Shown here in pieces: positions 1,868 through 55,006 of a stretch of DNA of 64,000 nt; the first letter of the stretch is position 1; each line of letters starts with the position of its first letter. The notes below the pieces were generated by a model, which was not told the origin of the DNA, ran no database searches, and worked only from the letters and a program-made list of their open reading frames with translations. Source of the DNA: Bugula neritina (lineage: Eukaryota; Animalia; Bryozoa); contig OZ037765.1 of assembly GCA_964035545.1 (NCBI GenBank), positions 5,714,698 to 5,778,697 of the forward strand, in the 5' to 3' direction. Position numbers and translations under genes: made by a program.

Positions 1868-4468
1868 TGTGCATTTGTTGGGTCTTTCTCCAGTGTGTAC
1901 TCTCATGTGTATTAACAACTTATACCGTGCGTTGAATGGCTTGTGATCTCTTTTACAGTCTCTCCAGAGGCAAGTAAAATCTTCTCCTTTACGCTGATCA
2001 ATGTGATACTTTTCTACATGCTTCACCAGCTCTTCTTTGTTCTCACATATCTGATCACACTCCACCCACAAGCACTGTGTTATTTGCTACAACAGTAAGC
2101 AGCTTATCCTAGTCTAGACCCAATTAACTAAAATAAGTTATCTTTTACAATACTGAATTGGATTAAATTATCAACTCTCAGTGATTGTCTAACCAGATCA
2201 TATTTCATCATTTACAGAGAGTACATAAGAATATATAGAAGAGTTTAGCAGAAGACTCGGCTACCCGTACCTTGTCCTCATGGTCTTCCTCGTCGTCATC
2301 GTCACTATAATCCTCGTGTCTGTTAGAATGAGTCGTATCCATGGATTCCCCATGTCCACCATTAGCACCAGCTGCCTGGCTACTAGGGTACATAGGTGGC
2401 TTTCTTGGAGTCAATGCAACCTTTTAAGTATAAATGACAATGTACTATAGACATCATGCAACAGCCCAGATCTCGCTCTTCTATATCAAAGTGTCACCTA
2501 AATGATGCTTACCCCTGGTCGTGGTAGTGGCGGAGGTCTGGCAGTCAGTTGGGGCATTTGCTGCTCTGGATGGTAAATCAGGTTCTCTTGGTGCTGCATT
2601 GGTATTGGCATTGGCTCTTGCTTATGGGGCTGCAAAAGACCTGGATGCTGGTGGGCGTTGTTTATTGCCAGGTGATGCTGAGCAGCATCCATGGGAATGT
2701 TTTGCGCGTTTTGCTGTTGACGATAAGCGATGTATCCTTCGACCATTTGAGCATGATCCTGATGCATCACAACTTGGTTTGCAGACATCATTTCATGCTG
2801 TGTGTTCTGCTGCTCTAATAGAGCCATGCGAGCATGATCAACACTCACATACTCATCTTTTATCTTTACATCAGCCATATTTTTTGGAATTAAATGTCCT
2901 TGGTTGCCAATGCTTTGAAGTGCTGTATTATTTGTAAAAGGACTGAGTCTGCTTCTATTAGCAGACGACGCCCTGCTAGAGCCACCATTCATGTAGGCTA
3001 CTAAAGATGTTGGTGAACTGCGAATAATAGAGTTCAAGTCGATGCCATCTGCGGAAAGTGGAGATATTGAAAGAGCTCTCTTTTGTCGATGTGATTTGGC
3101 GGAATGTCTAGGACTTGAGAAAATTGATGGTGCAGGGCTGAAGTCCAAACTGGGAAATGGTGAGAGAGAAACATTGCTAACGGGATACTGTGACAAAGAG
3201 CTAGTCGAGAGCTGCGGGTCACTGTTCTCTTGTAAATGATGATTATTTAAACCTGGCAAGACTTTGAAAGCATTCCAGTCTGGTCTCGAAACAGGAAGAG
3301 GTTCCAGAAAGTTCTGTCCTCTTTCACTGCCCATTGGTGTACGAGGGGTATTGACTCCATTCCTTTGCTCCAGCGTTGGTGTCAAAACTGATGAAAGGTG
3401 GGGGGTCATTCTGATGCTTGAAATGTCACTGGGTGTAGGTGAATGGTTAGCATTGTTATTGTCTGGTAACTTGAGGTTTACCGTGTCTATGCGAGAATGA
3501 GAATGACTGTGATATAAAGCGTGATGATGTGCTGAAAAAGTTGGTTTTTTAAAGATATCTTGAGAATGGTGAGACTGCAGACTTGAACTGTGGTTTGGCA
3601 CAGGTATCTTACTGGGTGGGTGGGGTTTGGTGAAATTCTGACTCCCATTGTTGGATATGTGCAAGTCAGACACCGGCTCTAAATTTTGAAAATATCAAAT
3701 ACACACGATCTATCTTTTGGCAGAAGCTACTAATAATCTGATTATTCTTCCAAAAATCATATATCTGCTACAGAAGAGTTAGAACTTACCTTTTTTAATG
3801 ATCTGCTTGGGAGGGCTTGGCTTATTGAAAGAACTGCCATATGTTGGTGGTGCGCTTGATTGAGATTTGTTAAAAGTAGGAAGGGAAACCCCTTTGCCTA
3901 TTGCTTTGTCACCTCCACCAGGTGCGTTGAGAGGCACCGGAGTGCCTGCTTGTATTCTGACTGTTGGAAGGTTGCCAGATTGCACTTCTCTGAAAGTTTA
4001 CATCTCTTTTGAAAGACTTCCGTATTAAAATCAGTTAACTATAGACTACGACCTTACTCAAAAATATTGTATGCATACATACACTGCATACAATGCTCGA
4101 CTACAACAAGATGTTTTAATTATTAAACAAAACTTGGCAATTTTATGTTCCAAGGCAAAATATAAGATGCAAACTTCTGAATGAAAGCAAATTGTACATG
4201 GCATGCCTACATTATCAGTGTAAGCATGTATAACAATGCGCTATGGTTAAAAAAAGTTATTGTTTATGATAACTGGTTTCATTAAAACTTAGCTCTGCAT
4301 AGTTGCATTTACTAATCTTCAAGATAAGTTTTAATTATTAATTATCCCTCACTGTTATTACTTAGAACTATAAAGGTTCAATATGATTGCAAGTTAGTAA
4401 CTTGTACAACTGATGTTCTCCATGATATCTACAAAAATCTATTAGACATACCCAGCAGGCCTGTTCAT
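1868..4468 (-). CDS. GLIS3: GLIS1/3-type Kruppel-like C2H2 zinc-finger transcription factor, 5' part. Exons 4452-4468, 3790-3989, 2513-3678, 2271-2420, 1868-2086; remaining zinc-finger exons were not found and probably lie left of the window
   Basis: The ZF1-2 exon CLWVECDQ...HVEKYHIDQRKGEDFTCLWRDCKRDHKPFNARYKLLIHMRVHTGERPNKC is the GLIS1/3 signature. KRALSISPLSADGIDLNSIIRSSPTSLVAYMNG matches the conserved GLI/GLIS3 N-terminal region. Exon phases join correctly from MNRPAG|EVQ. Confidence 0.9.
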
Positions 4469-6501: not shown

Positions 6502-7932
6502 CTAAAAGAGAATTAACAGGTGTAGATAAATATTTCGTTAATCACATGAAAGCTCCGCCCAAACTCAATATCATTGGCTAACCAGGAACAATCAATCATA
6601 ATCATTGACACTTTAGTGATGTAATAAAGCGGGAGAAATAAATAGAGCAGCATTCAATACTGAATACATTTGATAGTAACTAAGCAACTGGCAACTTTAT
6701 CAAAGCTCTATGTAGTTGAATAATTGAATTTTACACACAGTCAAATTGTGCCACACTGTACAAGCACGGAGTAAAAATTAGGTTTAGTAGGAAATAAAAC
6801 AATCTAAGTTGTAGTCAAGCATATACCTGCAACAGTTGGCAAACAAGGAAATGTTCATAAGGTTGATGATAAATATGACAATACAGCCAGGCAGTTTTAA
6901 ATGTAGAAAGCATTAAAAACAATAAAATAAACAAACAGTTATAAGGTGCATAATAGCAAAAGTTATAAGTGATATACTACCCCAGCTTGACAAATAGCAT
7001 GTACTTTTGTAAACAATATAACTTGTTATAATTGCACTATTAAATGCTACACGCTGGACAAATTGATCAAAATTCAACTTCCTTAATAATTAAGCAAATC
7101 ACCTTTTTTAGAGTCCCATAGGATGTAAAGTTTTTAGACTAAAAAAAAATTTATCTGCATTACATAATTAGTTCCTAATCAGATTACAGAAAGAATTAGA
7201 CAGGATGACCATCAGTGTTTCTAAAAGACTGGGAGATGAAAAGGAGGAAATGTTGGATTTTATTTGACGTACAAATGATTCAGCCATGATTAAGCAGACT
7301 CTGCTTTATTGCCAATGTCAGTAGTTTGATTTTTACAAAAAACTAAACAAGACCAATTGAAATTTGATTTTCTCCAAGACTTTTTACTACAATATCTTTA
7401 CTACTTTCTGACACTCTAATAAGTATGTTTCAAAAATTTGAAAAAACATTGAAGTTGCAATTATTAACAGAGCATAATTAAATCAACAGCTAGCTAATCC
7501 TAATAATACTGATTTTTTTTCCTTCAGCTATACCAAGCTCATGTTAAATAGCTTGCACAGTAAAAATAGGTACCCAAAACCTAGACTTCCAATTTCCAAC
7601 CTTCGTGGACAAAATATATTTTCCAAATTAATACTCTAAAAGTTACACCATCATTTATTGTTCTATTTCTTTCACCGCTTTCCACAAAGGTTGTTTTGCA
7701 ATCATTAGAGAAATACTTCAGACTAAATTAGGATGAAATTATCTATCATTTGCTGAATCAATTCATGATAGTTATTGTTATAACTTATGGTGCCTGTAAA
7801 GTAACAAGCTACCTTTGATTCTCTAGTCATGTTTGGCCAAGCTGAAAGCTTATAAAACACTAGTCAGCTGCAAAGCATAATTTCATCGATGCTTGCAAAA
7901 TACCATTCTATCCTATGATCATTTGCTATAAG

Positions 7933-8141
7933 GAGCAGCCGTAGTCTAGAGGTTAGAGCGTTTGCTTTGTAAGGACGAAGTCATGGGTTCTAGCCCTGGT
8001 GAAGGTCATTGGTGATGTTAAGAAGAGCATCCAGTCATAATTGCTCCTGTGTCTCATATGAATAAGTCCTTAACTTGATTTAACAAAAAATCCTTTCCTT
8101 CAGGGGTTCTCACAGGGATAGTGACTATAAACTTTCGTGAG
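7933..8141 (+). mobile_element. tRNA-derived SINE (family S, copy 1)
   Basis: A-box/B-box-like tRNA head (gtagtctagaggttagagc...gggttctagccct), then core TGATGTTAAGAAGAGCATCCAGTCATAATTGCTCC and tail GGTTCTCACAGGGATAGTGAC, which are shared with 20488-20682 and 33165-33345. Confidence 0.7.
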
Positions 8142-10349: not shown

Positions 10350-13300
10350 TTATATTAGGTTGTCTCTTGGTGCATTAACAGCACCGATAGTGTTACTTCT
10401 TTGAGAATAATCTTCATGATAGAATGGCCGCCTAAAATACAAAAAATACACCCATACAACAACCGGCCATAACTAAGCATCAAAGTACCACATAATGATG
10501 GTTTTGCAATGTCCAATATGGCAACACCTTAGCCGTTTTACAATTTAGTATGTTCAACTCACAATTGATATCATATATTTTGCATATGCTAAAGTTGATA
10601 GCTGACCAAAAATTCACTACGAGCAAATTTCATTATACGAGAGAGTTTAAGTTTTGCTTTACCACTAATAGAACTACAATATTGCATCAGCTACTAAGAG
10701 TAGGATGTGGAATAACGAGTATTGAATACACCACAAGACTTACATTACGCCGAGAGTCTGACTAGCATATGGCGTAGCCTCAGCAGATCTGTTCAGTGTA
10801 CCGAGAGGTATGGGTGAGCCACTCGCAAAACTCTCTTGACGAGACAGATTTGGACCAGAGAATATAAAGGCTTCTTTATTCTCTTTGCTCTTCTGGGGAG
10901 CTTGTGCTTTCTTTCTCAGACACAATATCTGAAAGGGAAAAAGACAGCACATTCAGAGCTATTACTATGTCTAGTCTAGTTATGAGTACGCAGGTAATTA
11001 TGTTTAGTCTAGTTGTGAGTACGCAGGTAATTATGTTTAGTCTAGTTGTGAGTACGCAGGTAATTATTACAACACATAAACACTAGAAACAAATTATCTC
11101 AAATAAACAACAGATTTAAATAATTCATATTCAAGTGGCTAATTACTACAAAAGCAAATTTTGAGACAACAATTCCCACTATATCATTTAAAAATTTAAG
11201 CTTTAAAAGAGTCAGGAAACTAAAAAAATATAGTTTCAATCAAGCTTATGGCTGAGATCCTATTTCTACTATAAATCATTGAGTGTATCTGGGATAGACT
11301 CTACAGTCAGTGTGACAAATCATGCCCTACTTACACCAACGATGATGACTATGATGACAACAGTGGCTACGGCTACACCAATTATAACATATCCTCCCCA
11401 GCACAGAGTCGTGCCGTCAGACGAGCGAATCTGGAACTTGGCAGCAGGACAACCAGTCAGCGGTTTATCATAATACAAGTCAACAGCTTCCTGTGAGGAT
11501 GACTGAGCTAGAAATGACCCTTCCACTTCCGCATTTTCCCATGCATAATCTACAAAATGCATTACTTGCATAAATTCTTACCAAAAGAATTGTGCAAAGA
11601 TAAGGTATAAAGAGAGACTTGGAATACTTAGGATAACGTACCTAATAGTTGCTCAAATGCCAACACATATTCTGGGGCCGGATCATTTTCACTTCTCGGG
11701 TCATCTTTATGTTTCTCGTAATGACTCTCACCAAAACCTCGTAAAACACCTGTCAGCAAAAACAGTGAGTTTACTAATACGGCAGCAGGTGTTACCCAGC
11801 AGCATCCTGATTGGCTAAACAAATGTCTCAATATAATATCAATGTGGACACATGCAATAGTTTAGCAAAAATAAATGGTACAGTATGGCAATTCTATTGC
11901 ATAATCACAACGAGCCACTTTTACAAAGAGTATTAGGAACATTCTATGCAAGCTCAGTTTGTTATGTAATATTGTATCTTGCTCAAAAAATTATTGGCAA
12001 GCAATGACTGATAATATTACTTAATAGGATTTTCTAAAAATATTTTAATTTAAATGTTGTAAACAGCTGTTGTAGATTCACCATAGTTAATAGCTTGTTT
12101 AGACATAGGGCATGAATTTTCCTTATATTAAGAACTCTCCATAATGGCCACATTTCAACATGAGTATTTTATGACTATTTGCCATGTTGTTAGACTGACA
12201 TCAATACTTCATCAAACTTGGTGTTGCAAAAGTTTAAAACGCCAGAACAAGTTGAGCCAAGCACATTGCATAAGTAACACCCTACGGCCTACACTGTACT
12301 GAAAGCATTTCAACTACGAGGTAAAGAAGTTTACAAACTTACGTGAGGTGTTGAGAGGTGGAGTGTTGACTGCTCTACGGTAGGCAGCAATCACTTCATC
12401 AATTGTTACAGAATCATCGAGAGAGTTGAAGTACATTGACCTCAAAGTGTCTGCCTCAAACTGATAGCCAAGAGGGATGAGCATTTTGTACTCCGTAGAC
12501 TCTGTGTTACCTTCTATAGAAAAGTTAGCGCCTACAAGAGATTTTTGGAGCTCAGCTGCTTCAAATCCTGATTTTATGGCAGCAGTCGTGTCCCCATCAC
12601 TGTAAACAACATCACATAAAATATTTACTACATCAGTTGCAAAATTACTGCTAAAAACCTGCTCAAAAGCATGTTAAATTAACACAGACAAAAATACAAT
12701 TTACTAAATTCTAAACTTCAACGTTTGTTCTATTTAAATTGCAATTATGCAAATTTTTAGTAGACAACACTAAAAATACAATCATGTATTACTAGGTGGT
12801 TAAGCTTACATTCTTTGCTTTGTTCCTATGACAACAAACTTGTACAGGTCTGCCAACTGTTTATATGGGACTGATAGCGAACTGTTTGTGACTGCATTCA
12901 GTGCTGTCAGGATATCATCTACATCATCTCCGTTATTCAACTTTTGAACTGCGGCAGCAGTCCAATAATATGCTCGACTTATCACTGCCAAATCATCGGT
13001 ACTAGCAGAGAGGGGTAAAAGCCAGTCGGGGTTAAACTCAATTTCATTGGCCTAAAATTGAAAAAATTACCTGCTTTAAATTATAATAAACACAAAAATG
13101 TGGTCGTTTGAGTTTCTGACTTACAATTCTATCAATCCTTTACTCACTCATCAGTTTCTATCTAAGTCAAACCTTGCAAATGCATTCAACAAGTATTTCC
13201 ACTTATGCTTGACAGAGCATAAATGAACTGCACCAAGAAGCAAGATATATTCACTTACGTATTTATCATATATGTAGTCATATGTACTAAAATATGCATT

Positions 13301-15802
13301 AGCAGTCATTCTATAAAGTAGGTTCTGCGTTTGTTCATCAACATCTGCCAAAGTGAGTAAGTGATTTTCTGCCACATCAAACAACGCAAGCTAAAATAGA
13401 ATGAGTTTTATGCAAACCAATTTTATCAACTCCGCTTCAAAACACTGTATGGATTCAATATGTTTTTGAAGGAATAAAATTAAGTTAATTCAGATTTACT
13501 GGAAATATGTCTTGCGAAATAAGCTGTTTACCATATTTCATAACAACAATTCACAGTGGTGATTAATGAAATTCTGGTGAGAAAGATATTTCTATCATAA
13601 CATAACTCCATTGTTGAGTCATAGCTTCCTGTATATTGCCACGACTCACTTCAACGATTAACTAGACACATTCATGCATAACCATGTATAAATATACAAC
13701 ATATTTTACTGTTCAACTTTATGTATTAAAAAACCACTACAAAAAGCTATAAACTACCTGAAGTTGAAAGAAATGGAGTCGCTCATATTCATTAATTCTA
13801 CGAAGTGACCTGCTCATGTAGACTACTTCTAACTGATGAACCACCAGGTTATCTCCCACCTCTTTAAACAAAGCTGTGTCATCTGATTCAATTGTATTAC
13901 GAAACAAAAAGTCACGCTGATCACTCAACATCTTCTGCCCTTTGTTCCAATAAGCATAATACTCTGCAATGTCTACACAATCCGAATATATTTGCCAAGC
14001 CCCTTTTACTTCCAGAGCTTCAAATGTGTACATTGCTCCAGTAGCCGTGTTTTCACTTTCGGGTGAAATAATATTTTTTCCATTCTTGTAAGGGTTTAGA
14101 TTGTGTGTTAGTAGCTGCAATGCAAAAGTGTTGGACTCTTCGGCTATCCCCTCAATAGTTTTGTAGTTATTAAAATGCAGAAGCTGGGCATTTCCATCAA
14201 CAACATTGAGGATATAATTCTTCTTAGTAGTCGTATCACTGGAAAATATCTTGATCATGGCTTCGAGTCCCTCCTCAAAACTCGGTGCTGAATGTAGTCC
14301 GATTAAAGCTTCTATTAGTAATTGTTCTTGCATGGACTGCTTTACCCTGAAGTCGGCTCTTTTGGCTATCTCTTGTAGTTTCTCGTAGTAATTTGGCACC
14401 ACGTCATCTCCAAGTCCGTAACCCATGTTTTTATTAGCCAGAATCTTGCCAACATATGCCATTGAGTAGTTGGAATCAATGGCAATAGCTTTGTCTAGCA
14501 TATCATGAGCTAAGATATACCAGCCAGCTTCCATGGCCTTCCAACCAAGTGCGAAATTGTGGTAGGCTTGTTGATCTGTAAAATTATATAAATATGTATT
14601 CCAACTTTTGATTGTTGTTGCATGATAAGTTATTCGCAAATAGCTCTACTAAAATGCTTTGACTAAAATTGTATAACCTTGTGTTTATAAATGGGCAAGT
14701 GAAATATCATGCTATATTATATATCTAAATTTGAGTTTGAGCATAATAAAATTTCAATAGTTATTAACTGCACCTAATAGCTTTATACAAGAAAGCAGTT
14801 ATTCTAAAATAACAAAAGGTTAAAAAACAATGTATGAATATTTCAGTTTATAGGACTTTGCGATTTCTTTCTGGCAAATTACAGCAATAGATTTGACCAC
14901 AGATGTTGATTATGTTTAAACTATACTCTACAAGTCCGCATTCACAAGAATAGGCCAACTCTGAAAATTATGACACCAACATAATAATAACAAGAGAAGA
15001 TTAAAGTCATAAACCATTTAGGTCAAGTTCTTTGATTTATTTACCAACAAAGATATCACATAGCTTATTTACCATCATCTGTACAGTTAGGGTTTGGCTC
15101 TTCTCGAAGGTATATACGATAATGAGTTGAGGCGACATTGTTTCCAACATAATCAGGGTCTAGTGTACCGAAAGAAGGATTTTCTGAGTACACATATCCG
15201 GTGATGTTGTGAAGTGCACACTTCCCTGCATTGGCTTGAAAATAGTCGCAGGCTCTACACACAAACTCCTTTTCCGTGAGACAGGCCATAACACAGCCCT
15301 CTGCCGACAGCGCGTCTCGTTCAATGGATCGCTTCGCTGGTCGAGTACGAAAAGCGGTTGTACCATATACCCGCTCATTCGAAAAGGATTCAAGAAGTTG
15401 GAAATTTAAATCAAAAACTTTGGATATTTCTTCCTCATCACATTTGGTAACTACAAAGAGGCACAACTAACAATGCATTATAATTTGAATATAAGCACGA
15501 CACCATCAACGAAATTAAATACCAACCATTTTGGTTGCCTATTACACTGACGAAAAGCAAAGCAAATTTGTTTTTTTAAGGAGGGAAATAAATTTACCAA
15601 ACAAAAAATAAACAAAATACTTACAAGTGCCAAGAGAAAATGGATGTATAAAAGAAATGCTTTGGCCAAGAACCTGTCCATCATCCCAAAGTCTTTGAGC
15701 TTGAAGTGGACTTAAGTTTATACTAGTCTGTTGCCCAAAGACACCAATGTGAGCATGGGAGAGTATTATCCAAATAAACAGGTACGATGCTTTAGCATTC
15801 AT
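10350..15802 (-). CDS. Type-I membrane protein, paralog A (~864 aa): signal peptide, PAN/Apple domain, TPR-like helical ectodomain, TM, cytoplasmic tail. Exons 15625-15802, 15073-15450, 13758-14575, 13259-13390, 12810-13051, 12343-12599, 11642-11749, 11335-11549, 10744-10928, 10350-10431
   Basis: All ten exons have GT/AG boundaries in compatible phase, total 2595 nt (divisible by 3), and match paralog B exon for exon. PAN Cys pattern SAEGCVMACLTEKEFVCRACDYF...KCALH; TM YVIIGVAVATVVIIVIIVGILCL followed by RKK. Confidence 0.85.
10966..11067. repeat. Minisatellite, 33-bp unit (TATGTTTAGTCTAGTTGTGAGTACGCAGGTAAT) x ~3, intronic
   Basis: Direct tandem repeats visible. Confidence 0.9.
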
Positions 15803-16885
15803 TGTTGTTGAGCTCCGAGTTATAACATTGAATATGTCAGAGAAGTAACACTGTTGCAGCATATTATACTACAACACTGAGATACATCATGGTTAGATTG
15901 TGACATTTTGGTATTTTTAGCTTCTGAAGCGTATAACTATTAATAACCAGTAGGTAACAAATGGATCCAATTTTTAATTTGAAGGGAGAGGGTTATTATT
16001 GAAATCTTGATATTTAGGTAAAAAGTCAATTAAGTTATTAAAAACAATTCATTTGAGCTCGCCGATTAGTTTAATACAAAAAATTGCGTCAGCTAGAAAT
16101 AAAATGTGCTAAATTTATGAGACAAAACTCTGGTGAAGAATTTTCCTGTATCCACCACTTTGAGCCAGATCACTGGAGCGAGAATCCCAAATAGGTTGTT
16201 CATAGAAACTGAATTCATTACCATGGAGCTGATATGCTCTATGAAAAACAATTGGGGATAGCATGGAAGAATATCAGCAAATGTGAAGTATGAGTAGACA
16301 TGCAGACATGCAATAAAACTTGTGGAAATGAGTTAGAATGTTGACGAGCCACACATTTTTGTGAGTGTGTATTCAACGATGTTACAAATTTCAATACATC
16401 AAACATTTTAATACAAGATAAATGCTATTAAAAACATTTCTAGTTCAATGAAGTAATAAAGGAAGTAGACTTTTCCGTTGTCATTTAAGACAACAATCAT
16501 TCTCAAGGTAACTATGCTATGATCGAGATACGAGTACTTGATAGAATAGACACAGTGATACATTTTTACCATTTATATTAACCAACAATATTGAAAGGAT
16601 TAGAAATAAAGAATAGTACGAAGGTGCCAAAGGTTAAAATTTAATAAATTATATAGTAAAATAAAATATTTTTGGCCTAGAACTATGCAAATTGTCTTTG
16701 TTTTATAAATTTGCATCTATCCAAAGTAGTGTTACACTAGTTACAAACGACTTGAAAGAATCAGAATGCGGTAAAGTCTACGACTCACAGTAAAAAAGTA
16801 ACAGGATCAAATAAAGTTAGCTATATAGGCTAAACGAACGAGTCAATTATAAAAAACAAAGACACAACTTTGCAACGCAGGGCTT

Positions 16886-19800
16886 CTAATGAGAACTCGA
16901 AACATGGATTTCTCCATTAGTGTTTCCAACACCTCCAATAGTATTGCTTCTCTGTGTATAATCTTCATTATGGAAAGGTCTTCTACAAAAACAAGATAGG
17001 GGTTAGGTTCTGCTAAAAATAAAACCAATTAAAAATAAATTCAGGGAGAGTAAATAAAAGATAATACAAACCAACCGGTATTCAAATAGGGAAATAGAAG
17101 AGAGAAAGTTTAACACACACAAACACACCATGCTGAGAATTTTCACCAACAAATCAATATAGGTAAAATGAAGAAATGAAAGAAAACTCGGCGTTACCAA
17201 TCCAGTAACTTAGTAAACAGTTCAAACAGAGCCACATATTAACTACTATCAACATTTCCAATGCACGTCTAATAGTTTGCATTGTAAATAGTTGATGCTA
17301 GCTTAAGATTTTCAAACTTGTAAAGATAAAAAATATTGGGTGTGTGATAATTAGATAAAAGCTGTGGGAGTTTGACCAAGATATCTGAATATAATAAACA
17401 AATCTTCCCGACAGCATATTGATAGAACACTTTCTGTATTCTTTCCACAAAGAGCATTCAACACTAATATTGCTTTTTTTCTAGAAGAGAAACTTGTCCC
17501 AATAATAAGAAACTTTTATTAAAATTATACTTCATAAAACGAGTTGCAGTCTCTGTAAAAAGGGACAACTCCCTGATTTAAGGTAGCTACAACAAATAAA
17601 GAACTGATTAACTGGTTAATCAGTATGGTATTAAATAAAGAAAGATACGTGAATACATACTGTATACTTAGTGTCTGACTAGCATACGGAGTCGGGTCAG
17701 GTGACCTTCTGTTCAACGTGCTAATCGGCATCACCGAGCCGCTGCCGAAACTATCCTGACGAGCAAGATTAGGGCCTGAAAAAATGAATGCTTCTTCCTT
17801 CTCTTTATTCTTCTGAGGAGCTTTAGCCTTTCTTCTCAAGCAGAGAATCTATAATTGAATTAAGTGCAAAGTGAAGAACAGAAGCTGCTCTGGTTGAGTT
17901 ACAGAACACTGGAGTTCTATGTAATAACTTCTACTGCAACAAATGTATCGATTAGTTTGAATAAATATAACACTGTTTCTGTGCTGCCAATACGGCATGC
18001 TACTAATTTTGTATGATGTCAACATAATTTTCAAAAATATTCAAAACTGTGATAACCTGCTATAAAATATTTTCTGAAAAATAACGAGGCAAAACTGTCC
18101 ATTCAAACCAGCAAATCTTTGTCATTCTATATTTACAGCACGTATCTATAAGGCGTACCAATGTACACGTTTCTATTTAAGGTAGACTAAGGCCGTAAAT
18201 TTCCCTAAAGCTCGTCATATTTATTATAGCATTCTTCATATTCTTGAAAGTCATAATACTTACACCAACAATAATGACTATGATAACGACTGTAGCCACA
18301 GCCACACCAATAATTATGTATCCGCCCCAACAAAGACTTTTCTTGTCAGCGGAGCGAATCTGGAACACATCAGCCGGGCAACCAGATAGTGGTTTATTAA
18401 AATAGAAATCCACAGCTTGTTGGGAATCTGTTTTAGCAGGAAATGCTCCGGAGACTTCAGCGTGTTGCCAAGCATTTGCTACAAGTTACAAAGTTGAAGA
18501 CTAAATAAAAATTTCAGTAAATAATATTTTAATTTAAAAATAAATATGTTGAAAGTTATTACAAGCATACCTAGCTTATTGAATGCCAACACGTATTCTG
18601 GCCATGGACCGTCTTCATCTTTTGGATCATCTTTGTGCTTTTCGTAGAGACTTTCCCCATAGCCTCTTAAAACACCTGTTAGTAGCGGTCAAAACTATTC
18701 ATTACAACTGAATTACCGACATATTTGCTTGGAATTTAACTTAAATTTGCGTGATTAGAAAACTGTAAGGACAACTCCTACAAAAAAGTCTAAAAACTTT
18801 TCTGTTACATTGATCTACATATATTGTCAGATTTGACATTTAGGCACTGTGCTTTGCAATACAAAAGTGGCAACTAAAACTACTGTTCCTAAAAACTTTA
18901 ATGCTATTCAGTTCGATAGCAAAATAAAATCACACGTTATAAAAAATAAAAATATTACAATAAGTAAAATAGTCTCTATATATTATACATATGGGTTCAA
19001 AACTAAGGTCATTAGTGATGTCAAGAAAAGTACCAGATTATAAGTTCTCTTTGCTAAGACCATGTGGTGTGTGTGTGTGCATGTAGTGTGTGCATGTAGT
19101 GTGTGCATGTAGTGTGTGTGTGCGATATATATATTACATGCGTATTTCTGATCAACCCACACACATAGATGTCTATTTCACTGTACTGCTGCTAATTTAA
19201 CAACAAAGGGAAACTTACGCGAGGTGTTGAGAGGTGGAGTGTTGACTGCTCTACGGTAGGCAGCAATCACTTCATCAATTGTTACAGAATTATCAAGAGA
19301 GTTGAAGTACATTGACCTCAAAGTGTCTGCCTCAAACTGATAGCCGAGAGGGATGAGCATTTTGTACTCCGTAGACTCTGTGTTACCTTCTATAGAAAAG
19401 TTAGCGCCTACAAGAGATTCCTGGAGCTCAGCTGCTTCAAATCCTGATTTTATGGCAGCAGTCGTATCCCCATCACTGTAAAAGACAATGAAATTAAATT
19501 GAAATGTCAACTTAGTAAGAAAATGAATTAGAATTACAGTTTTTATTGCGAATGCTATTGAAGTTGAAAAAGTAGAAAAGTAAATTTACAGTTGGTTTTT
19601 ATTAGTTTACCAAATTAAAATTCAATATTATATTTTTACAAATCAAATTTTCAAAGTAACCAATGAGTTTGCTAAATTACAGCTTTCTTAGTGAAAGCAG
19701 AAAATGCAATTTTATTCAAAACTTGTATACTGTAATCTCAAGCGTAAAATCCTCCACCATAGTTTCTGAGATATGAATTACTTGTTATTTACTGCAATTG

Positions 19801-22800
19801 AACAATGACCAGGGTGATTTGCTACCACATCTAAACCCACAGCTCAAATATATAAACTGTTTAAAGTATCATAACAGAAAAACTGAAACTCAACATGTTA
19901 CAATAATAGTGACAATCAGAATATATAACATTCTGTTAAGTTACAGGGAGTTGTCAATATTATATAGAAAGATTTTACCAAAATAAAACTCCATCATTGT
20001 GTAAAGCTGCGTTTATCCATGTACGAGTTTTTAGCAAAAGTATAAATGAACCATAAGAATTGCAGTGACATGCCAAGATTAGGGCATTATTGTCCTAAGC
20101 CAGCACAGAGCTCATGTACAGGGCTATTGAGTAGTTGTCTTTAGGACTTTAAAATCTACTTACACCTTTTGCTTAGTACCAACTACGATTAGCTTATAAA
20201 GATCTACGAGCAACTTGTAAGAGTTTTCTTTCGCAGCCAATTTGGCACTATCAAGTGCTGCCAGGATATCATCTACATCATCTCCGTTATTCAACTTTTG
20301 AACTGCAGCAGCAGTCCAATAATATGCTCGACTTATCACTGCCAAATCATCGGTACTAGCGGAGAGGGGTAAAAGCCAGTCAGGGTCAAACTCAATTGCC
20401 TTTGCCTGTAACAGGCAATCATTGTGATCCTTACAAAACAAAACCTAGGCATCTGATATAACACGCATGTATAAGTTTGCACTGACGCTCACGTGACTTT
20501 ATGGTCATTATCCCTGTGAGAACCTCTAATGAAAAGGGTTACTTTAAAGCCGGCTAAAAACATTTTCTATTGGAGCAATTATGAATGCATGCTCTTCCTA
20601 ACATCACCAGCAGTGTTTAGACTCAAACCATTGACCTTGTGTTTACTAGGCCAGAACTCTAACCAATGTACCACAACTGCTCATAATTTTGTTCTAGCTG
20701 TGCAACTATAAAGGCCCACAAATAAGTAATAGCACAATTTTTTCATAATGGCAAACTGAAAATTCTTTAAAAGCAAACACACTAAATTACCAAAAGTTTG
20801 CTGCAGTAAACATTGACAATAGTGTTAATTACTACTTTTAGCAATATTTCCAACTAGCCAACAATAAAGAAACAATACCAGGACTACATGTAGTTATGAG
20901 TTTTACTTACGTATACATCATATATATAGTCATAAGTACTAAAATATGCATTAGCAGCCATCCTGTAGAGCAGAGCTTTAGTTTGCTTATCTCCAGACAA
21001 TAAATCAAGATCAATCAAACCCATCAAGTGATTTTTCGCCACATCAAAATAAGCAAGCTAAAATTTTTAAAAACATATTTTAACTCACAATTATAACAAT
21101 TATCTATTACACGTGTCAATATTTTTCTGTAATTATTGAAATCAAATATTTTTAACAATTATATTCCAACAGGGTACCAAAATACCTAAAAAAACTACCT
21201 GAAGTTGAAAGAAATGGAGTCGCTCATATTCGTTAATTCTACGAAGTGACCTGCTCATGTAGACTACTTCTAACTGATGAACCACCAGGTTATCTCCCAC
21301 CTCTTTAAACAAAGCTGTGTCATCTGATTCAATTGTATTACGAAACAAAAAGTCACGCTGATCACTCAACATCTTCTGCCCTTTGTTCCAATAAGCATAA
21401 TACTCTGCAATGTCTACACAATCCGAATATATTTGCCAAGCTCCTTTTACTTCCAGAGCTTCAAATGTGTACATTGCTCCAATAGCAGCTTTTTCACTTT
21501 CCGTTGATATTCTTTCTTTTCCATTCTTATAAGGATTCAGGTTATGAGTAAGCAACTGCAAGGCGAATATATTCGACTGCTTGGCAATTCCTTCAATCAC
21601 TTGATAACTATCATAAACAAGTAATTGAGCATTTCCATCAACAACATTGAGGATATAATTTTTCTTAGTAGTCGTATCACTGGAAAATATCTTAATCATG
21701 AGTTCGAGTCCTTCCTCAAAACTCGGAGCTGAATGTAGTCCGATTAAAGCTTCTATTAGTAATTGTTCTTGCATGGACTGCTTTACCCTGAAATCGGCTC
21801 TTTTGGCTATCTCTTGTAGCTTCTCGTAGTAATTTGGCACCACGTCATCTCCTAGCCCGTAACCCATGTTTTTATTAGCCAGAATCTTGCCTACATATGC
21901 CATTGAGTAGTTGGAGTCAATGGCAATAGCTTTGTCTAGCATATCATGAGCTAAGATATACCAGCCAGCTTCCATGGCCTTCCAACCAAGTGCGAAGTAT
22001 TGGTATGTAAGCTGATCTAAAAAACAACATATGTTTTCATCAAAACTAAAGTTTATGAGTTCACAATATTGTGAGTGGAATTGTAAGCAATTGGTCATGA
22101 TACTATATACCTATACTTGATAATGAAGCAGTTATGAATGTTGACCTACCTTCATCATAACATGCTATTGGAACCTCATTCTTTTTATATAAGATGTAAT
22201 GATCTGATGCGGGGTTATCTCCCACATAAAATGGATCAGTGGTAGTCGGGTCTTCCAGGTACAAGGGACCAGTGGTGTTATAAAGAGCACATTTTCCTCC
22301 ATCTCCTTTGAAATAATCTAGATCGCGGCACACAAATTCTTTTTCAGTGATACAAGCCAATACACATGCTTCAGCCGATAAAATCTTATTCTCCACAGTC
22401 CGAATAGCTTTAGCTTGGCGATATGCTGACTTGGTCACTACTCTGACATTCAGGTTTGAATAATCGGATTTATCAACTTTGTCTATCCGGTATGGATCCA
22501 GGAATTGGAAATCAGAAGTGAAAACATTTTTTATTTCCAGCTTGTCGCAGTCGGTAACTAAAAATATGCACTCGGCAATTTATGTAAACATTTTTATCCT
22601 ACATGACATAACTTACATTGAAAAATAGCATAGGCACAATATTAAAAACAACATACCAACAAAAGAGTTCTGTCAAATAAGCTTTCACCAGCAGTAAATT
22701 AAAAAATGAACACAAAATGTCAAATGGTTTATATGTCCGGTTTGCCTTTGACAGGTGAATATTGAAGCAGTGTAAAGTTTCACTAGAGTAGAATTACTGG

Positions 22801-23000
22801 ATATGTTTTAAATAAGCATGAGACTTACGGGATCCAAGAGAAAATGGATGTGAAAACGAAGTACTTCTACCCAGAATGCTGCCATCATCCCACAGGCGCT
22901 GAGCTTGAGAAGTGTTGAAATGTATATTAACTTGCTGCCCATACAGCACATAACGACATGTGTATATTTGAAAAATAAATATTGCGATCCACCATCTCAT
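16886..23000 (-). CDS. Type-I membrane protein, paralog B (~882 aa), same architecture as A. Exons 22829-23000, 22150-22557, 21199-22016, 20911-21057, 20164-20405, 19219-19475, 18571-18675, 18264-18478, 17661-17848, 16886-16982
   Basis: Exon lengths 818, 242, 257 and 215 are identical to paralog A; total 2649 nt in frame. Signal peptide MRWWIAIFIFQIYTCRYVLYG; PAN motif SAEACVLACITEKEFVC; TM YIIIGVAVATVVIIVIIVGILCL. Confidence 0.85.
19064..19122. repeat. (GT)n / GTGTGTGCATGTA compound microsatellite
   Basis: Seen directly. Confidence 0.8.
20488..20682 (-). mobile_element. tRNA-derived SINE (family S, copy 2), in intron 4 of paralog B
   Basis: Reverse complement reads GAGCAGTTGTGGTACATTGGTTAGAG...TGATGTTAGGAAGAGCATGCATTCATAATTGCTCC...GGTTCTCACAGGGATAATGAC, collinear with copy 1. 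Confidence 0.7.
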
Positions 23001-24040
23001 GATTTTCTAGTTACTTTGTTACTTCACAAGATATACCGAAAATTGTGATGGAAATGCACCGAGACTGGAAGTATTTTCGAAGCATAAGGCTCTTTCAGCA
23101 CAGCTAGTGACTAGTACAGCTCTCACGTAAATCCACCAAGTCCTCCTTCTAATTGCAGGTTAATTATGTGCAAAAGAAGAGGTGGATTCAGCAGGGGTAA
23201 ATTCACTTAATGTTAAGAGACTTGATATTGAAAAAAAACGAGCACCACAGAGCGAGACTGCATCACAATTTGCTATTGCTATAGCTAGACTTGCGCCAAG
23301 AAAAAAAATGCTAGGCAAGTAGCAAAATAATACTTTTCCCCTCCAAATAATCTATTTGAAAATCCGCTCTTTGTCAGTTCAGTGAAGCAAAACCAATTTA
23401 TGCTAGTTCACCATGAATAACGTTGAGACCGCAAGATGGCAAAACTCATTAATCATATCAACAAGTAGAATACTGGCAAAAACCTAAGCCCAAGGGTGTA
23501 AATCTTTATGTACAAGAAAATATGTCATGACGTTCACGATGGACAATTTCCTTGCGTAAAACGAAATCTACATAAAAAATTCAAGTAGCAAATGACAAGA
23601 CTAATCAATTGCTAATGAGTGGCTTGAAGACAACTAGGGTCAAATCTTCATCAGTTCTGTTTGGTAAAATCTGGATGGAAGGTTTTAAAATATACCATTT
23701 GACTGATGAAAACTTTGTGTGAATTCAACTGCATACTTATGAAGTATAACCATTGTATTATATTTATGAAACATATAGGGAAATTACATCTGTTGGAAGC
23801 ACCACTGGCATATATTCAACAATCTACTAAAATAAATTATAAAAATATTATAAAAAGTCATTCAATCTACCTAATGTATAAATATAGTTGAAACACAATA
23901 CCATCAGATTGTCTTTAAAAGCGTAGCTTTATATTTACACTTATATGTATATTATGTAGCATACAATGATAGAGGGATTATATAAAAATCCTGTTGAAAA
24001 CATACAATGATTTATAAAAACCGATATAAGCAAGTCTTAC

Positions 24041-26059
24041 CTAGCCTTTATTCCCAGAGCACATGTGTCTACAGTACGAAATACTGTCTGAGAACACACC
24101 AACCATACATATAAGCCATAAGATGAGAGGTAGCAGAGACAGAGAACATATTAATATAATAACCAAAGTCTCACGTTGTTTACTTGTTGACTCATCAAAC
24201 CTACAAGATTACATAATATTTTGCAATGAAAAAATGCTGAGTTGTAATTGAAATAGATAGACACGTGAATATCCTATCCTGTTGTAGACTCAATAACAGC
24301 AGCAAAAATATAATATAGTTTTTAAAATGTACTTATACACAACTGTCTGCTATCATAGATATTGACGCAAAATAGTCACGTTTTTCACGGAAAAGTCCTA
24401 ATGTCTCCTAAACTGACTAATTTAAATCGTATATTTTAGGGGTTAGCAAGTAAGTACTATAACTATTAATAAATGCTAATAAAATATGTTGAGTTCCCAA
24501 ACATGGCAGATAAATAAATAAAATTAACCTCTCAGGAGTGTAAAACAGACAGCCAGCCAACCAGAGCATCACAACCAGAATTCCTAGTAACTCCCGGGAC
24601 TCTTCATAGTGCAGTGGGTTGGGACCATGAGGTATAGCCCGGGTTTCTTCAGATATATACATGATGGTGTACGAGGCTATGGCTAAGCAGTATGCCATTT
24701 CCAGCACTACTAGAACCTTCCACCATATACTACCTACAGTAAATCATACACGTCTTTCCATTATAAATAATGTAAAACTACTTTGCACAAAAATTTGAAA
24801 GTTTCTATGAGTCATACAAATATTTCTTTCAAATCAAAAATATAAACAGGCGTCTTTAGCCTGACCTTTATATGCTTAGCCTGACCTTTATATGCATTCA
24901 ATTTTGAACTTTTTTAATCAAACCCAACTAGTAGTTAAGAAAAAGCCTTGCTGTCAAGGTTAGGTTGCATCTCAAGACATGATTAACTAGTTGAAGTAAC
25001 TGAGTGATGTACATTCTAGGAGCACAGTCTTTGACTGTCCCTCTGGCCTCTACAGTCTACACTCATTGGGAAAAGAGGACAACTTCTTTTCTCACTCATT
25101 AAACACAAACACAAGTTGGATTTTCAATATAAATACTTAGAGCTACAAACAAATTCGATGATTTTGTTTTTAAAAACTCATCAGTTTGGCAACAAAAATA
25201 TTTGTAAATACTGAAAACTGAAAAATGTTTAGCCAAAAAGAACATAATGCTGAATTCAGGCTAGTCAAAGAAATTGTGAAATTAATAAAATTATATGTAG
25301 CTAATTTGAAACTGTGATTCTTCAGTTTGAAAGAAATATTTCAAAATTGAGAGCAAACAAGAATTGCTCAGCAAGATAAATCAGAGATGATACGCCAACA
25401 CTGTGTATATAAGACTGGTTGAATACCTTGAAAGTTGGGTGAAGTAGCTATTGCCAAACATAGCAAGCTTGCCAAACCATAAAGTGGCTGTAAAAATAAC
25501 AGAAATTATAACCAAAAAGTTTATAAGCAAAAATATAGTACCAAATAAACATTAAAATATTAGTAGAAATTTGCCTATAAAAATAATGGTCAATAATACA
25601 TTTCTAAGGGCATCTGTTAGCAAGCACCTACTTGTAAAGCTAAAAACTGAAACATTTTCCAAACAAATTCTGCAGTATAGAAAAGCAAGTGCGTCCAAAA
25701 AGGTATTATTGATTTATCATAGCTTTCTATAATGCAGTTAAACCATTCTAGGTTAGACGTTAGTGGGACCTTGGCACTGTTACTAGTGCAGTTGAGTTAT
25801 TTTTAAAGCTAACATAAATATGACAAATTTTAAATGCATCGGATAATATGAACATTTGTAAGAGAAAAACTATAAAAAAAGACATTATAAAAATACTAGA
25901 TTTACTAACCATCCACAACTCTGGATCAGGATCATTGTGCTGGAGTACAGCACATATGCAAGTAAAGACTGCCATTACAGCATTACATATTCTCCATGTT
26001 TTAAGTCTCAAAGATGCTTTTGGAGGTGCAAAAGAGCGGTGGCCTATCTCACTAGCCAT
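24041..26059 (-). CDS. TMEM220: Transmembrane protein 220. Exons approx. 25910-26059, 25427-25487, 24528-24732, 24041-24200
   Basis: WRICNAVMAVF...LQHNDPDPELWM|PLY and EESRELLGILVVMLWL are TMEM220 family motifs; multiple TM helices; stop TAG at 24041-24043. Confidence 0.85.
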
Positions 26060-26749
26060 CTAATTAAAAGTGCTGCAAGTTGAAATACAATTTCATTAAT
26101 GGTAGGAAATTTAAAAATACAAAGAAATGTATTTATATGTTAATGAAAACAACAGTTTGATAAAAGATAATATACTGTAATTTGATACAAAATATCAAGT
26201 CAATAAGCTAAGACATTAAATCTTTTCAACAGCTAAAAGCAAAGTGAGTGAAAAATAAATTATCTAAACTCATCATAAGTACTTCCTTAAAAGTTAAATG
26301 CATATAAGTGAAACTACTAAACATAATAGTACAAAACAATTAAGTGTAAAGTAAAATAGAAACAATTTATCGAAATATTTTTAGCAAAAGTTTTATGGAA
26401 AAACTCTGATGCAGCTCTTCCATTGTACACAGATTGTGGCATTAATGATAATGCTCTTACTTTATGCTCAAAATGGGCATTCTGCCATTGAGCTTTCTAG
26501 CAGCAAGGGTAAGCTGATGGGCTTTATGTAAAGCTTATAGTTATAAGTGTTGTAACTCTAACTGCATTTTAACTTAAATGTACACATTAAAATATGCTTG
26601 TGGAGAGAAATTAGTGCAAAGCCATAAGTGTAAACCGTGGTGCTCTGTTCTGTGCAGACGAGGGGGACAATCCCTGAAACAGCTGCTGCACACATATTGA
26701 GTATATATTATGGTGAAGAGTACACGTTACCAAAGTGTTTTAATTTCTA

Positions 26750-30939: not shown

Positions 30940-31975
30940 TCAATCATCTTTAGATGCTTCATCAAAATTTTCAACTAGATCTGGCACTTCATCATCTTCG
31001 TCTACTTCAGTGGTAGCAGGTGCTTTTTCTGTATTGGTCACTAGAAAAATGATTCACAATGTAATTTTTGAATTAATGTAAATAATAGCATGTCAACTTT
31101 CTACAGATGTACAATTAAATCACCAATCACTTGACATAGCAATGAGAGAACTAGAAGTAGTTTATATGCATGTGGGGATGTTAGCTATAGAAATAAACTC
31201 ACATCCAGCCACAGTTGTAGCCAGTTTCTTAAGGCTGGCCAAGTTCTCTGGGCCCAGTTGATTGAGGATTCCTGGCAACATCTCGGTTATTTCTAAAATA
31301 ATTGGATGACTTACATGAAATGATAGTGGGCAGCATAAAGATTACTTGAAAACAGCTCAATTAAATATGGAGCAGCATGTTCATTTCTAAATGCAAGCCT
31401 AACAAACTGAAGTGATGGAGGCTTTAAACTCAATTTGGAAATTTTGATAAACTAGAATCTCAATGAAAAATGTACATCTATGGCTTATGATAGTAGTATA
31501 TGAGAACAAGATACTGGTCATTGGTCATGTTTTCCTTTATAAAATAAAATTTAAAAAAATTAATTCTACTGTTGAGACAGGGGTGGGCATGAGTTCTGTT
31601 TTAAGGTTTTAAGAGTTGGGTGCACTTGTTAGCAAATGCAGAAATATGATGGCCAAAACCAAGTTAATCATCAGAGTGATAATTTTACAAGAGCTTACGT
31701 TTTGTCTCTGCGTGACCAGTGATAGAAAATGTGTTGGCAACTAGTGATGCTTGCACTTTAGGGTTGGTAAAGTGAATTACTGTTCCATCATCTTTAATCA
31801 TATTTACTTCTTCAATTCCGGGAATATTATTTACACCCAATTTCTTGAGTGAAGTCTGTAGCTTTTTATCATCTGTAGCAGCTGTTCTGTGTATGACCTT
31901 TTTCTTCCTACGCACTGAACCCTTACCTCCAGTTCGCACCTGTTCTTGAAGAGCTTTTAGTTTTTCAGGGTTCAT
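30940..31975 (-). CDS. BTF3: Transcription factor BTF3 / nascent polypeptide-associated complex beta. Exons 31699-31975, 31203-31292, 30940-31040
   Basis: [64 protein letters not shown]...[16 protein letters not shown] is a clear NAC-beta sequence. Confidence 0.97.
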
Positions 31976-32276
31976 TTTCAACTTCTAAAAGTAAATTAAA
32001 ACAGTCGTATAAAAGCGAATATCCTAATTTAATGCTTGGTAGAAACAGTTCAACTCCAAACTACTATTCCTAATACTATTCAATTAAAATGATTACTACT
32101 ATCACTATGATTATGATACCAACTCCAAGTCTGAAAGTGGAATAACTAGCAGTACTTCAACTTGTTAGTGGTCAATGTCGTACTTCCTAACACTTTACAT
32201 TGCAATTTGATTTTGAAATTGATAGAGTAATTTTAAATTTAATAATTTGACTTTTAGACTAAGACTGAAAAATTAT

Positions 32277-37400: not shown

Positions 37401-39067
37401 CCTTTGTAAGATTATTTATCTAAAGATGATTGAGAATGCAGAGTTGCCTGACCAGAGTGTGAATGAGAAACTGAGCGAAGTGTACAGAGCATTAGGTGAG
37501 GTGAAGCTGGAGGATAGCGACTACGGGCAGGCTACAGAAGATCTCCTTTCCTGTCTTCAAATCCAGAAAGAGTGCTTCACAGAGGACAATAGGTATTTAG
37601 CCGAGACGTACTTCCAGCTGGGCAACTGCTACCTCCTAGATGGGAATTATGACGCTGCCCTGGAGAACATGAACAATGCTAAGTCTGTAAGTCACGTTAC
37701 ACCCCCCCCTTCCCCATATTCTTATGGTTACTGATGGTACTGGTTGGTGTTGTCAGTAGTTGTCCGCTCAACAATTCTATGCATGAACCAGTTAGTCATA
37801 GTTGAAAAATACTACTCGCTATAAATACATAGTTTATCGCTAATAGTTTTCAATTAGGCTGCAACACGTCCAGTTGTAGACAAGTCTGCATGGAAAGAGT
37901 AGCTAAACTCATGGACAGAATTTAAGTGTAACATGAATTATATCAAACGAATGGCAATGTCTTGTCTGTTCTTCCAAATTTATCATTTTCTTTTACCATC
38001 AGATTTGTTTTAAATTTATTTTCTTGTCTCAAGGTTGGATGAGCCATTGTTAGTACTGATTCTAATAGAACCCGTAAATTAGGAAAGCTACCTTTTGTAG
38101 ATATTAGAGCTTCGAGTCTCCAATTTTGAAAAGAAGTTGACTGAAGAAATTAGTGAAGAAGAAAGCGAGAAATGTAACAAGGAATTGAAACAGTTGAGAC
38201 AATTGTTACCAGATGTAGTTTCTAAGGTTGGTTTTTCAATACATTATGCACTACTATTATATTAAATAACATTTTCATTCATTTCATAAAGTTGTATTAC
38301 GAGAAACACTGAATCGGCACCAGTAACTTGCTGTCGAACTTCTCCAAATACTCTCTAAAAAGTAATACTACAAGGGTTGATGTGTGTTTCACTTCTAGTA
38401 ATGAATTACTATTACTCAGCTGTTTGATACTTTGTTCAAAAATTAAATTGTATTTGGACTAAATCAACCATACACAATTATGAACTAAAAACCTCTAGAA
38501 TGTTGCAATTTCGGAATGGAAAGTTTTCAGTCTCAGCTCTATGAACTTTGGTGATGCTATTCATGGCAAGTTTTATTCATACTGAGTTTTCAAACTCTGG
38601 GAGGGGAAGTTCTAGTTAAGAATGGTGGTTACAGCTTCTTGCTTAATTACATTGTACTTTAAAACATTACTTTAAAATCAACTGCCTTATAGCAGTTGTG
38701 TATACATGCTAGGGAAAGCATCATTAAAATACTACTTTGAATTGCCTTCTCATTGCAGATTGAAGATGTTGCTGATGAAAGTGTTAATGCTAAGAAAGCT
38801 GAAACTGAAGTGAAAGCTGTTATTGCTAGTCAAAAGCAAAATGGAAGTACAACCATTGGCTTTGGTGAGACTTCAGGTTCTTCATCTGCATCTACGATTA
38901 CCACGCAGAAGGCCAATGATATATCAAACCTTGTTCGTAAACGAAAGCCCGAAGTTCAACCTGCTGAAGGGTCAAAGAAGGTCAAGTTAGAGTCTACCCC
39001 CACAGCTGAAGGAGATAAAGAAAATGGAGTCTCTTCCACAGACGAATGCTCGAAAATTAGCAGTTGA
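34403..39067 (+). CDS. NASP: Nuclear autoantigenic sperm protein (SHNi-TPR histone H3/H4/H1 chaperone). Exons approx. 34403-34542, 36004-36218, 36342-36413, 36597-36697, 36799-37066, 37351-37686, 38101-38226, 38759-39067
   Basis: YFYYGKALLELARTENTVLGNALDG, an acidic insertion, DDVPNLQLAWEILDLCKIIY, LAETYFQLG, TTIGFG and DISNLVRKRKPE are NASP hallmarks. Confidence 0.95.
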
Positions 39068-54582: not shown

Positions 54583-55006
54583 TGGGTCCTTTTACTTAAT
54601 TTAGTACACACTGAAATCTCCATTTTTTAGCTATTTTTCACAATTTAACTGCTAATGGACATGGACTTTTGCCCAAAACTAATAAAGCACCAATAAATAC
54701 ACCGAAACAATTAAGGCTCTTCTTAATTTTGCTTGATTTCCCATCTTTTTTTTTATATATTCAGCTTATTAGGAGTGCGGACTGTTACGAAAAAAACCGT
54801 AACGGTCCACAACCAAAAGTAGCTGAATAATTAGGAAAAAACATGGGAAATGAAGCAAAATTAAAAATAACTTTGAATATTTAGGTGTATTTGTTGATGT
54901 TTTACTAGTTTTGGCCAAAAAACCCATGTACATTAGCAGTTAAATTGTGAAAAATAGCTAAAAACTGAAGATATCCAGTGTGTACTAAACTAAGTAAAAT
55001 GACCCA
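54583..55006. mobile_element. Full-length foldback/palindromic MITE (family B), ~424 bp
   Basis: Left TGGGTCCTTTTACTTAATTTAGTACACACTG...TAGCTATTTTTCACAATTTAACTGCTAATG is the reverse complement of right CATTAGCAGTTAAATTGTGAAAAATAGCTA...CAGTGTGTACTAAACTAAGTAAAATGACCCA; central hairpin GGACTGTTACG-AAAAAAAC-CGTAACGGTCC. Confidence 0.85.

Follow-up and report, generated by a model that had tools for sequence, protein, structure and literature searches.

How can two neighboring genes be almost identical in some of their exons, silent positions included, and saturated with differences in the rest? The question is raised by a tandem pair of putative receptor genes in the bryozoan Bugula neritina, encoded on the minus strand of a 64,000-nucleotide (nt) stretch of contig OZ037765.1 (assembly GCA_964035545.1, forward-strand positions 5,714,698 to 5,778,697). 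This whole stretch is the window below, and coordinates without further label are positions in it. Copy A (10353 to 15802) has 10 exons and encodes a type I membrane protein of 864 amino acids (aa); copy B (16886 to 23000) also has 10 exons and encodes 882 aa. A preliminary description, made from the letters of the sequence alone, had proposed an old duplication with repeated ectopic gene conversion and had likened the pattern to that of immune, allorecognition, and gamete-recognition loci. Our analysis indicates that the mosaic is concerted evolution by interlocus gene conversion, a known process and here a well-supported one, and that the protein family is more novel than the mosaic.

Four converted tracts in three exons

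The 10-exon layout is shared down to identical exon phases; introns are GT-AG, and neither translation contains an internal stop. The introns are unalignable, as had been reported, with all nine A-B pairs scoring inside the range of shuffled sequence. Near-identity between the copies is confined to four tracts. Two lie in exon 3: tract 1 (14188 to 14555 in A, 21629 to 21996 in B) differs at 12 of 368 nt, and tract 2 (13758 to 14040; B, 21199 to 21481) differs at only 2 of 283. Tract 3 takes up the first 60% of exon 5 (exon nt 7 to 152; 12900 to 13045; B, 20254 to 20399; 6 differences in 146 nt), and tract 4 covers all of exon 6 plus position +3 of its donor site (12343 to 12599; B, 19219 to 19475; 7 differences in 257 nt). 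Together the tracts make up 40% of the coding sequence and differ at 27 of 1,054 nt between the paralogs; over the same 1,054 nt, the orthologs of two lineages (see below) show 39 and 43 differences.

The remaining parts are unconverted. They comprise exon 1 (15625 to 15802; B, 22829 to 23000), with a signal peptide recognized by hydropathy only and the start of the scaffold; exon 2 (15073 to 15450; B, 22150 to 22557), a PAN/apple-like exon of phase 1-1 that lies inside the scaffold, carries two indels, and has evolved faster in A; exon 4 (13259 to 13390; B, 20911 to 21057), with a 15-nt indel; the final 90 nt of exon 5, which are locus specific; exons 7 and 8 (11335 to 11749; B, 18264 to 18675), which hold the scaffold end, a two-cysteine stalk, and the transmembrane helix; and exons 9 and 10 (10353 to 10928; B, 16886 to 17848), which encode the cytoplasmic tail. 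In exon 6, the proportion of synonymous differences between paralogs (pS) is 0.08; sliding windows give 0 to 0.2 across the greater part of exon 3 and at the beginning of exon 5, compared to 0.55 to 0.88 in exons 1, 2, 4, and 7 to 10. Divergence is thus far from uniform along the gene, and the preliminary description was right about exon 6, about both parts of exon 5, and about the strongly diverged signal-peptide, PAN, fourth, and last four exons.

Its account of exon 3 as mostly near-identical also holds, with one addition. Of the 70 differences in the 818 nt of this exon, just 14 fall within the two tracts totaling 651 nt, and the longest identical run is 209 nt, against a maximum of 141 nt over 5,000 random placements. 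The near-identity is not continuous: a saturated, unconverted island of 147 nt (14041 to 14187; B, 21482 to 21628), unreported before, separates the tracts and surrounds the family motif LLTHNLNPY. Copies A and B differ at 15 of the 53 residues of the island and its edges.

The same mosaic in a second lineage

Both copies are present, in the same order, at locus L012 of a second, independent assembly (GCA_010799875.2). L012 is ~89% identical to the window, and pS between orthologs is 0.11 to 0.14, values that identify it as another lineage of the B. neritina species complex, in which three cryptic types have been described. We compared site patterns among the four sequences (A and B of the window, A and B of L012). 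Within the tracts, 19 sites are shared by the paralogs of each genome and none are locus specific; outside them, 447 sites are locus specific and none are shared by paralogs. Several of the shared sites alter amino acids in both copies at once, and the tract limits are identical in the two lineages. Recurrence of this pattern in an independent lineage points to interlocus gene conversion rather than mis-assembly and, with the low pS of the tracts, supports the proposal of an old duplication with repeated ectopic conversion.

Chimeric copies produced by assembly or polishing could also give rise to a mosaic. The tracts do collapse in short-read assemblies, where tract 2 forms a single unitig of about double depth, and the second assembly was Pilon-polished with short reads (PMC7576161), which could inflate its shared sites and counts against our interpretation. 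The window, however, comes from an unpolished HiFi assembly (tzBugNeri2.1; HiFi/hifiasm, quality value 53.7; PMC11480708), its tract limits are those of the independent assembly, and in short-read runs the depth doubles over the tracts while contigs of the unique parts match the window with no differences. We reject mis-assembly, an alternative the preliminary description had itself named, as very improbable.

Exon 5 of copy A in L012 is interrupted by an in-frame TAA (12797 to 12799 of that locus), and the copy is accordingly annotated in two pieces of 513 and 288 aa; copy B, with an annotated gene of 875 aa, is one base short in exon 8 (7321 to 7534). Either these are assembly errors or they are null alleles.

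Duplication history and mechanism of conversion

In a tree of the unconverted exons 7 to 10, A and B group together (94/97), and the duplication is therefore younger than the split from Watersipora. Watersipora has a single copy beside TMEM220, with no other within 10 kb on either side, and in another host (L003), the syntenic stretch examined contains one copy, flanked by TMEM220 and by the Gli-like neighbor also present here. Tree and synteny together place a tandem duplication of a single-copy ancestor adjoining TMEM220 on the Bugula line, after the Watersipora split. Introns and most exons then diverged to saturation, which ends conversion. Gene conversion requires a minimum of uninterrupted homology (PMC3924837, PMC3966223); among the exons free of indels, the three converted ones are the longest (818, 257, and 242 nt) and may have kept enough of it, while the PAN exon and exon 4 contain indels. 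Ectopic conversion at the DNA level, between copies ~7 kb apart, would keep overwriting the four tracts, and it has also acted after the two B. neritina lineages split.

The tract limits bear on the template. Tract 2 reaches the end of exon 3, and exon 4 is locus specific from its sixth base; exon 6 is shared throughout, and its donor position +3 is itself a shared site. Because the tracts halt where exons end and take in a donor base of an intron, the template would have been DNA and not mRNA. We rejected mRNA-templated conversion on this pattern, since the tracts cross no exon junction and contain an intron base, and we rejected a recent partial duplication because saturated exons and unalignable introns lie between the tracts. 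Protein constraint alone is also insufficient to explain the tracts, as they are no more conserved than the unconverted helical parts: identity to Watersipora is 50% in the former and 46% in the latter, and the tracts are not especially conserved across 19 homologs either.

Selected surfaces, neutral remnants, or an immune locus

The PAN exon had been described as staying distinct while the scaffold is homogenized. It is indeed unconverted and accelerated in A, with 25 changes unique to A and 10 to B; the B exon resembles that of Watersipora (60% identity) more than that of A (51%). The tail, in which B is likewise nearer the single Watersipora gene, has 13 and 5 unique changes, whereas the other unconverted helical parts are even (12 and 13). 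The PAN exon is not singled out, however, as exons 1, 4, and 7 to 10 and parts of exons 3 and 5 are unconverted as well. We consider the exon-3 island the best candidate for selected divergence: it is free of indels, sits between two active tracts, and surrounds the most conserved motif of the family. Islands of this kind have been described as a mark of selection acting against conversion (PMC3924837). The PAN exon and the island would both seem long enough for conversion but escape it. This suggests that selection favors two distinct binding surfaces carried by a common scaffold.

Against this suggestion, such islands can also arise neutrally, when indels or accumulated mutations bring conversion to a stop. 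In a purely neutral account, conversion persists only where long uninterrupted homology survived by chance, the islands are traces of old terminator mutations, and expression is the sole difference between A and B. The absence of indels from the converted exons and their presence in the PAN exon and exon 4 fit this account, as does coding-only concerted evolution, described as an outcome of purifying selection that maintains similarity (PMC3924837). The same mosaic also occurs in a second tandem pair (putative ABCA genes) 5.8 Mb from the receptor locus (C1:11624000-11660000), where exon-sized matches of 95 to 98% identity alternate with others of 68 to 75% between copies ~21 to 22 kb apart. 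As for expression, B-type contigs reach a depth of ~400 in RNA run X10, in which A-specific contigs are almost absent, and run X9 has both; contigs cannot quantify expression, and the contrast is a hint of unequal A and B expression. What the neutral account leaves unexplained is an indel-free island flanked by active tracts and alike in both lineages, along with an A-specific acceleration in the PAN exon and tail that the other helical parts lack. We regard it as a plausible explanation but not the favored one.

An immune, allorecognition, or gamete-recognition locus, with a diversified ligand-binding PAN domain on a homogenized scaffold, was the function suggested by the preliminary description. 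The single-pass receptor layout would suit such a role, and the PAN exon is among the most divergent parts of the gene as well as accelerated in A. The receptor family duplicates repeatedly, with an independent tandem pair in at least one other host (L015:517-3504 and L015:8510-12200, with L013) and two further diverged paralogs (P0012 and P0015) in one Logan sample. But searches with exon 3, PAN, and tail found only two copies in the 216-Mb genome; the ratio of nonsynonymous to synonymous differences (pN/pS) between the two lineages compared is 0.40 and 0.18 in the PAN exon, 0.18 and 0.11 overall, and below 1 in every exon; and conversion here erases differences instead of creating any. The tandem pair of the other host shows no homogenization in the four exons compared (5, 6, 8, and 9), which are 50 to 63% identical at the nucleotide level (51% and 50% in exons 5 and 6). 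Since the putative ABCA pair carries the same mosaic, the mosaic is no immune hallmark here. We found no positive evidence for the proposed role and judge it unlikely. Exon-scale homogenization of old tandem pairs recurs in the B. neritina genome, a warning against reading it as an immune signature.

Architecture of the putative receptor and distribution of the family

The window models were queried exon by exon; the Watersipora protein served for searches and folds at full length. The predicted protein has a hydrophobic N terminus, a 36-residue leader, the PAN-like exon, a helical region, the two-cysteine stalk, a membrane helix at about residues 760 to 790, and a tail of ~85 to 90 residues. 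This agrees with the previously proposed order of signal peptide, PAN-like domain, tetratricopeptide repeat (TPR)-like helical region, and single membrane pass, and with its lack of a match to a named family.

The PAN-like exon is flanked by phase-1 introns and inserted into the scaffold. We assign it to PAN from its cysteine pattern and subthreshold profile matches. The pattern C1..C-x3-C-x7-C..C..C6 is present, with five cysteines invariant in 7/7 rows of the alignment and the sixth present in all six full-length rows (the seventh row is partial). The Pfam profile PF00024 matches three of seven homologs (best E value, 4.1e-5), and hhalign aligned the exon to the genome's own PAN exons at 72%. 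Two observations speak against the assignment: PF00024 scores 17.3 bits in B and finds no match in A (gathering score, 21.4), and the predicted fold of this part has a predicted local distance difference test (pLDDT) value below 50. At least 142 PAN matches elsewhere in the genome are possible exon donors. Near-identical PAN exons also occur in dense arrays of dozens of matches at C1:2.8-4.2 Mb, C3:29.75-29.81 Mb, and C9:4.9-5.2 Mb.

AlphaFold predicts the part encoded by exon 3 as all-helical and TPR-like (pLDDT, ~90; best Z score of structure matches, 10.8); its top Protein Data Bank (PDB) fold matches are all TPR-like, and none is specific. Canonical 34-residue repeats are lacking: Pfam TPR_2 reaches 11.4 bits on the window copies against a cutoff of 27, and the TPR profile gives weak matches in 8 of 19 homologs. 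A match to NCBIfam TIGR04510 (30 of 400 bits) was rejected as a resemblance in the TPR region. A single-sequence AlphaFold model of the Watersipora protein (pLDDT, 35) was not usable, and a full-ectodomain alignment of exon pieces was set aside because short exons were misplaced.

Domain profile searches of the protein found no ZP, lectin, kringle, protease, or kinase domain, and profile, fold, and genome searches found neither an Ig-like ectodomain nor a multigene cluster. In the tail, all six copies examined retain the motif PYASQTL. Within it is a YxxQ, a type of motif bound by STAT proteins, which we offer as a lead only. From this anatomy, the most likely function is conserved cell-surface binding and signaling or adhesion: a noncatalytic TPR-like solenoid would bear the PAN module on a one-helix anchor, and the conserved tail would dock an intracellular partner.

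The searches detected relatives with 40 to 54% sequence identity in B. neritina, in Watersipora subatra, and on contigs whose exon limits agree, and nowhere else; we take these contigs to be bryozoan from gene structure and synteny. Among database proteins, the nearest to the pair is annotated as hypothetical and comes from an independent B. neritina assembly. No non-bryozoan animal relative was found among 1.84 billion representatives, and the literature searched held no description of the receptor family, which appears, as far as sequence can tell, confined to bryozoans. In one homolog (L017:10600-11770), an extra intron splits the exon-3 equivalent, and tandem repeats lie nearby.

A probable remote link to bacterial histidine-rich TPR proteins

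Structure neighbors in the Atlas include bacterial TPR proteins of 530 to 565 aa (template modeling score below 0.5). A bacterial set of similar size (alignment A5) comprises secreted TPR proteins of about 540 to 590 aa from Acidobacteriota, Latescibacterota, Gemmatimonadota, and others, with seven invariant histidines; we found neither a name nor a solved structure for this family. The set was first gathered via a short seed motif, which biases the match to the first repeat, and we count as evidence only an unseeded genome search and a C-terminal comparison. The A5 records (L027-L146 and L177-L183), of 500 to 600 aa, are widespread, and there is also a longer subfamily of ~770 aa in Planctomycetota and Verrucomicrobiota.

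Without the PAN exon, the bryozoan ectodomain can be aligned with an A5 protein over the entire length of the latter (hhalign probability, 77 to 93%). The alignment stops at a W-x-x-A-D/E common to both, immediately ahead of the stalk. Residues 120 to 600, which lack the seed motif, score 47.5 against A5 compared to 18 to 19 against generic TPR arrays, 20 against reversed A5, and at most 22.8 after block shuffling. In the unseeded search of 151 bacterial genomes with an exon-3 profile, the six best matches were all A5 members (per-genome E values, 9e-9 to 2e-6). One genome contains 150 TPR matches or more and gave a single match to this profile, its A5 gene. Several results weigh against a specific link: identity to A5 is a remote 16%, one generic TPR protein reached 30 bits in the profile search, the C-terminal hhalign signal fell to 2 to 3% with a small alignment of 14 sequences, and sequence searches reached no bacterial protein at database-wide significance. 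PDB sequence searches, plasmid tblastn, and a back-translated pattern search of bacterial genomes also gave no match.

At most one or two of the seven A5 histidines are kept in the bryozoan proteins, which have an invariant motif of their own there, and a metal site has thus probably been lost. By these comparisons, the bryozoan proteins would be relatives of the A5 family and not members of it. Specific homology between the solenoid and A5 is probable, and there is about an even chance that the solenoid came from bacteria by horizontal transfer, as distant animal or algal members may exist. The helical ectodomain may instead be an ordinary, fast-diverged animal TPR-like protein whose bacterial likeness is generic or reflects ancient shared ancestry. 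The first repeat fits generic TPR arrays nearly as well as A5 (41 to 45 against 49 to 65), and the generic protein at 30 bits and the unspecific PDB folds point the same way, as do nine introns per gene and an ordinary GC content at third codon positions (0.37). Such an origin does not readily explain the collinear end-to-end match, a C-terminal signal over 480 residues far above the controls, or the lack of non-bryozoan animal relatives among the 1.84 billion representatives; no A5 member was found in the B. neritina genome either, which is a weak test. We hold descent without transfer to be a reasonable alternative, though the less favored one.

Composite model and comparison with known systems

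As a whole, we tend to favor tandem duplication with repeated tract conversion and two selected surfaces on a receptor whose solenoid may be remotely bacterial in derivation. The fully detailed version is tentative and less likely than not: a phylum-specific signaling receptor built from a horizontally transferred bacterial TPR protein, an animal PAN exon, a membrane anchor, and a tail with a tyrosine motif, its two Bugula copies sharing a homogenized scaffold while selection keeps two specificity surfaces distinct, the PAN domain and the loop region that took the place of the bacterial histidine site.

The mosaic resembles other cases of interlocus conversion with islands of divergence, such as the red and green opsins, Tigriopus GOT1p1/p2 (PMC3728101), coding-only concerted evolution (PMC3924837), and Caenorhabditis paralogs (PMC3966223), in that some tracts are more alike between the paralogs of one lineage than between the orthologs of different lineages, divergence elsewhere is saturated, introns are unconverted, and tracts span 150 to 370 nt. 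It differs in that the converted part is a minority of the coding sequence and its near-binary limits are equal in two lineages. This makes the pair a clean two-lineage example that itself points to residues possibly distinguishing A and B.

Compared to the A5 family, with which the likeness is a collinear profile match over the whole ectodomain without the PAN exon, the animal protein adds that exon, the cysteine stalk, membrane helix, tail, and nine introns. PAN/apple cell-surface proteins (PF00024) include PAN-ZP proteins and plant S-domain receptors. The Bugula receptor shares with this group the six-cysteine pattern on a symmetric phase 1-1 exon and a secreted ectodomain but has a single PAN-like module within a TPR-like solenoid. 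Like Hydractinia Alr1/Alr2 and Botryllus fuhc/fester, the pair comprises tandem single-pass proteins with short tails in a colonial animal; unlike them, it has no Ig-like domains, only two copies, and no sign of an excess of amino acid change between lineages. For the msp130 family, a bacteria-to-animal transfer has been hypothesized (PMC11878542), with a bacterial secreted protein adopted as an animal cell-surface protein in marine invertebrates; sequence and fold are unrelated to ours, and the analogy is one of origin only. If the bacterial link is true, the bryozoan receptor was assembled from a transferred gene and exon shuffling. It is in any case a concrete candidate for bryozoan-specific cell-surface biology, in a phylum with few characterized genes.

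Genomic setting

The assembly totals 216.0 Mb in 321 pieces, and its largest chromosome carries the window. Eight of the nine splice junctions of copy A are present in contigs of an RNA run. The neighbors in the window are a Gli-like exon, identified by eye (2498 to 3673), TMEM220 (24000 to 26100), NAC/BTF3 (31685 to 31981), a NASP-like gene with SHNi-TPR (36785 to 39067), an intronless TMEM121 (58615 to 59676), and Rab GDI (62236 to 62565). TMEM220 and the Gli-like gene adjoin the receptor gene in other hosts as well. Three pairs of dispersed short repeats with 72 to 79% identity (8010 to 8141 and 20488 to 20609, 49822 to 50072 and 54583 to 55012, and 262 to 428 and 46331 to 46499) are probably old transposon fragments, and one of them sits in intron 4 of copy B.

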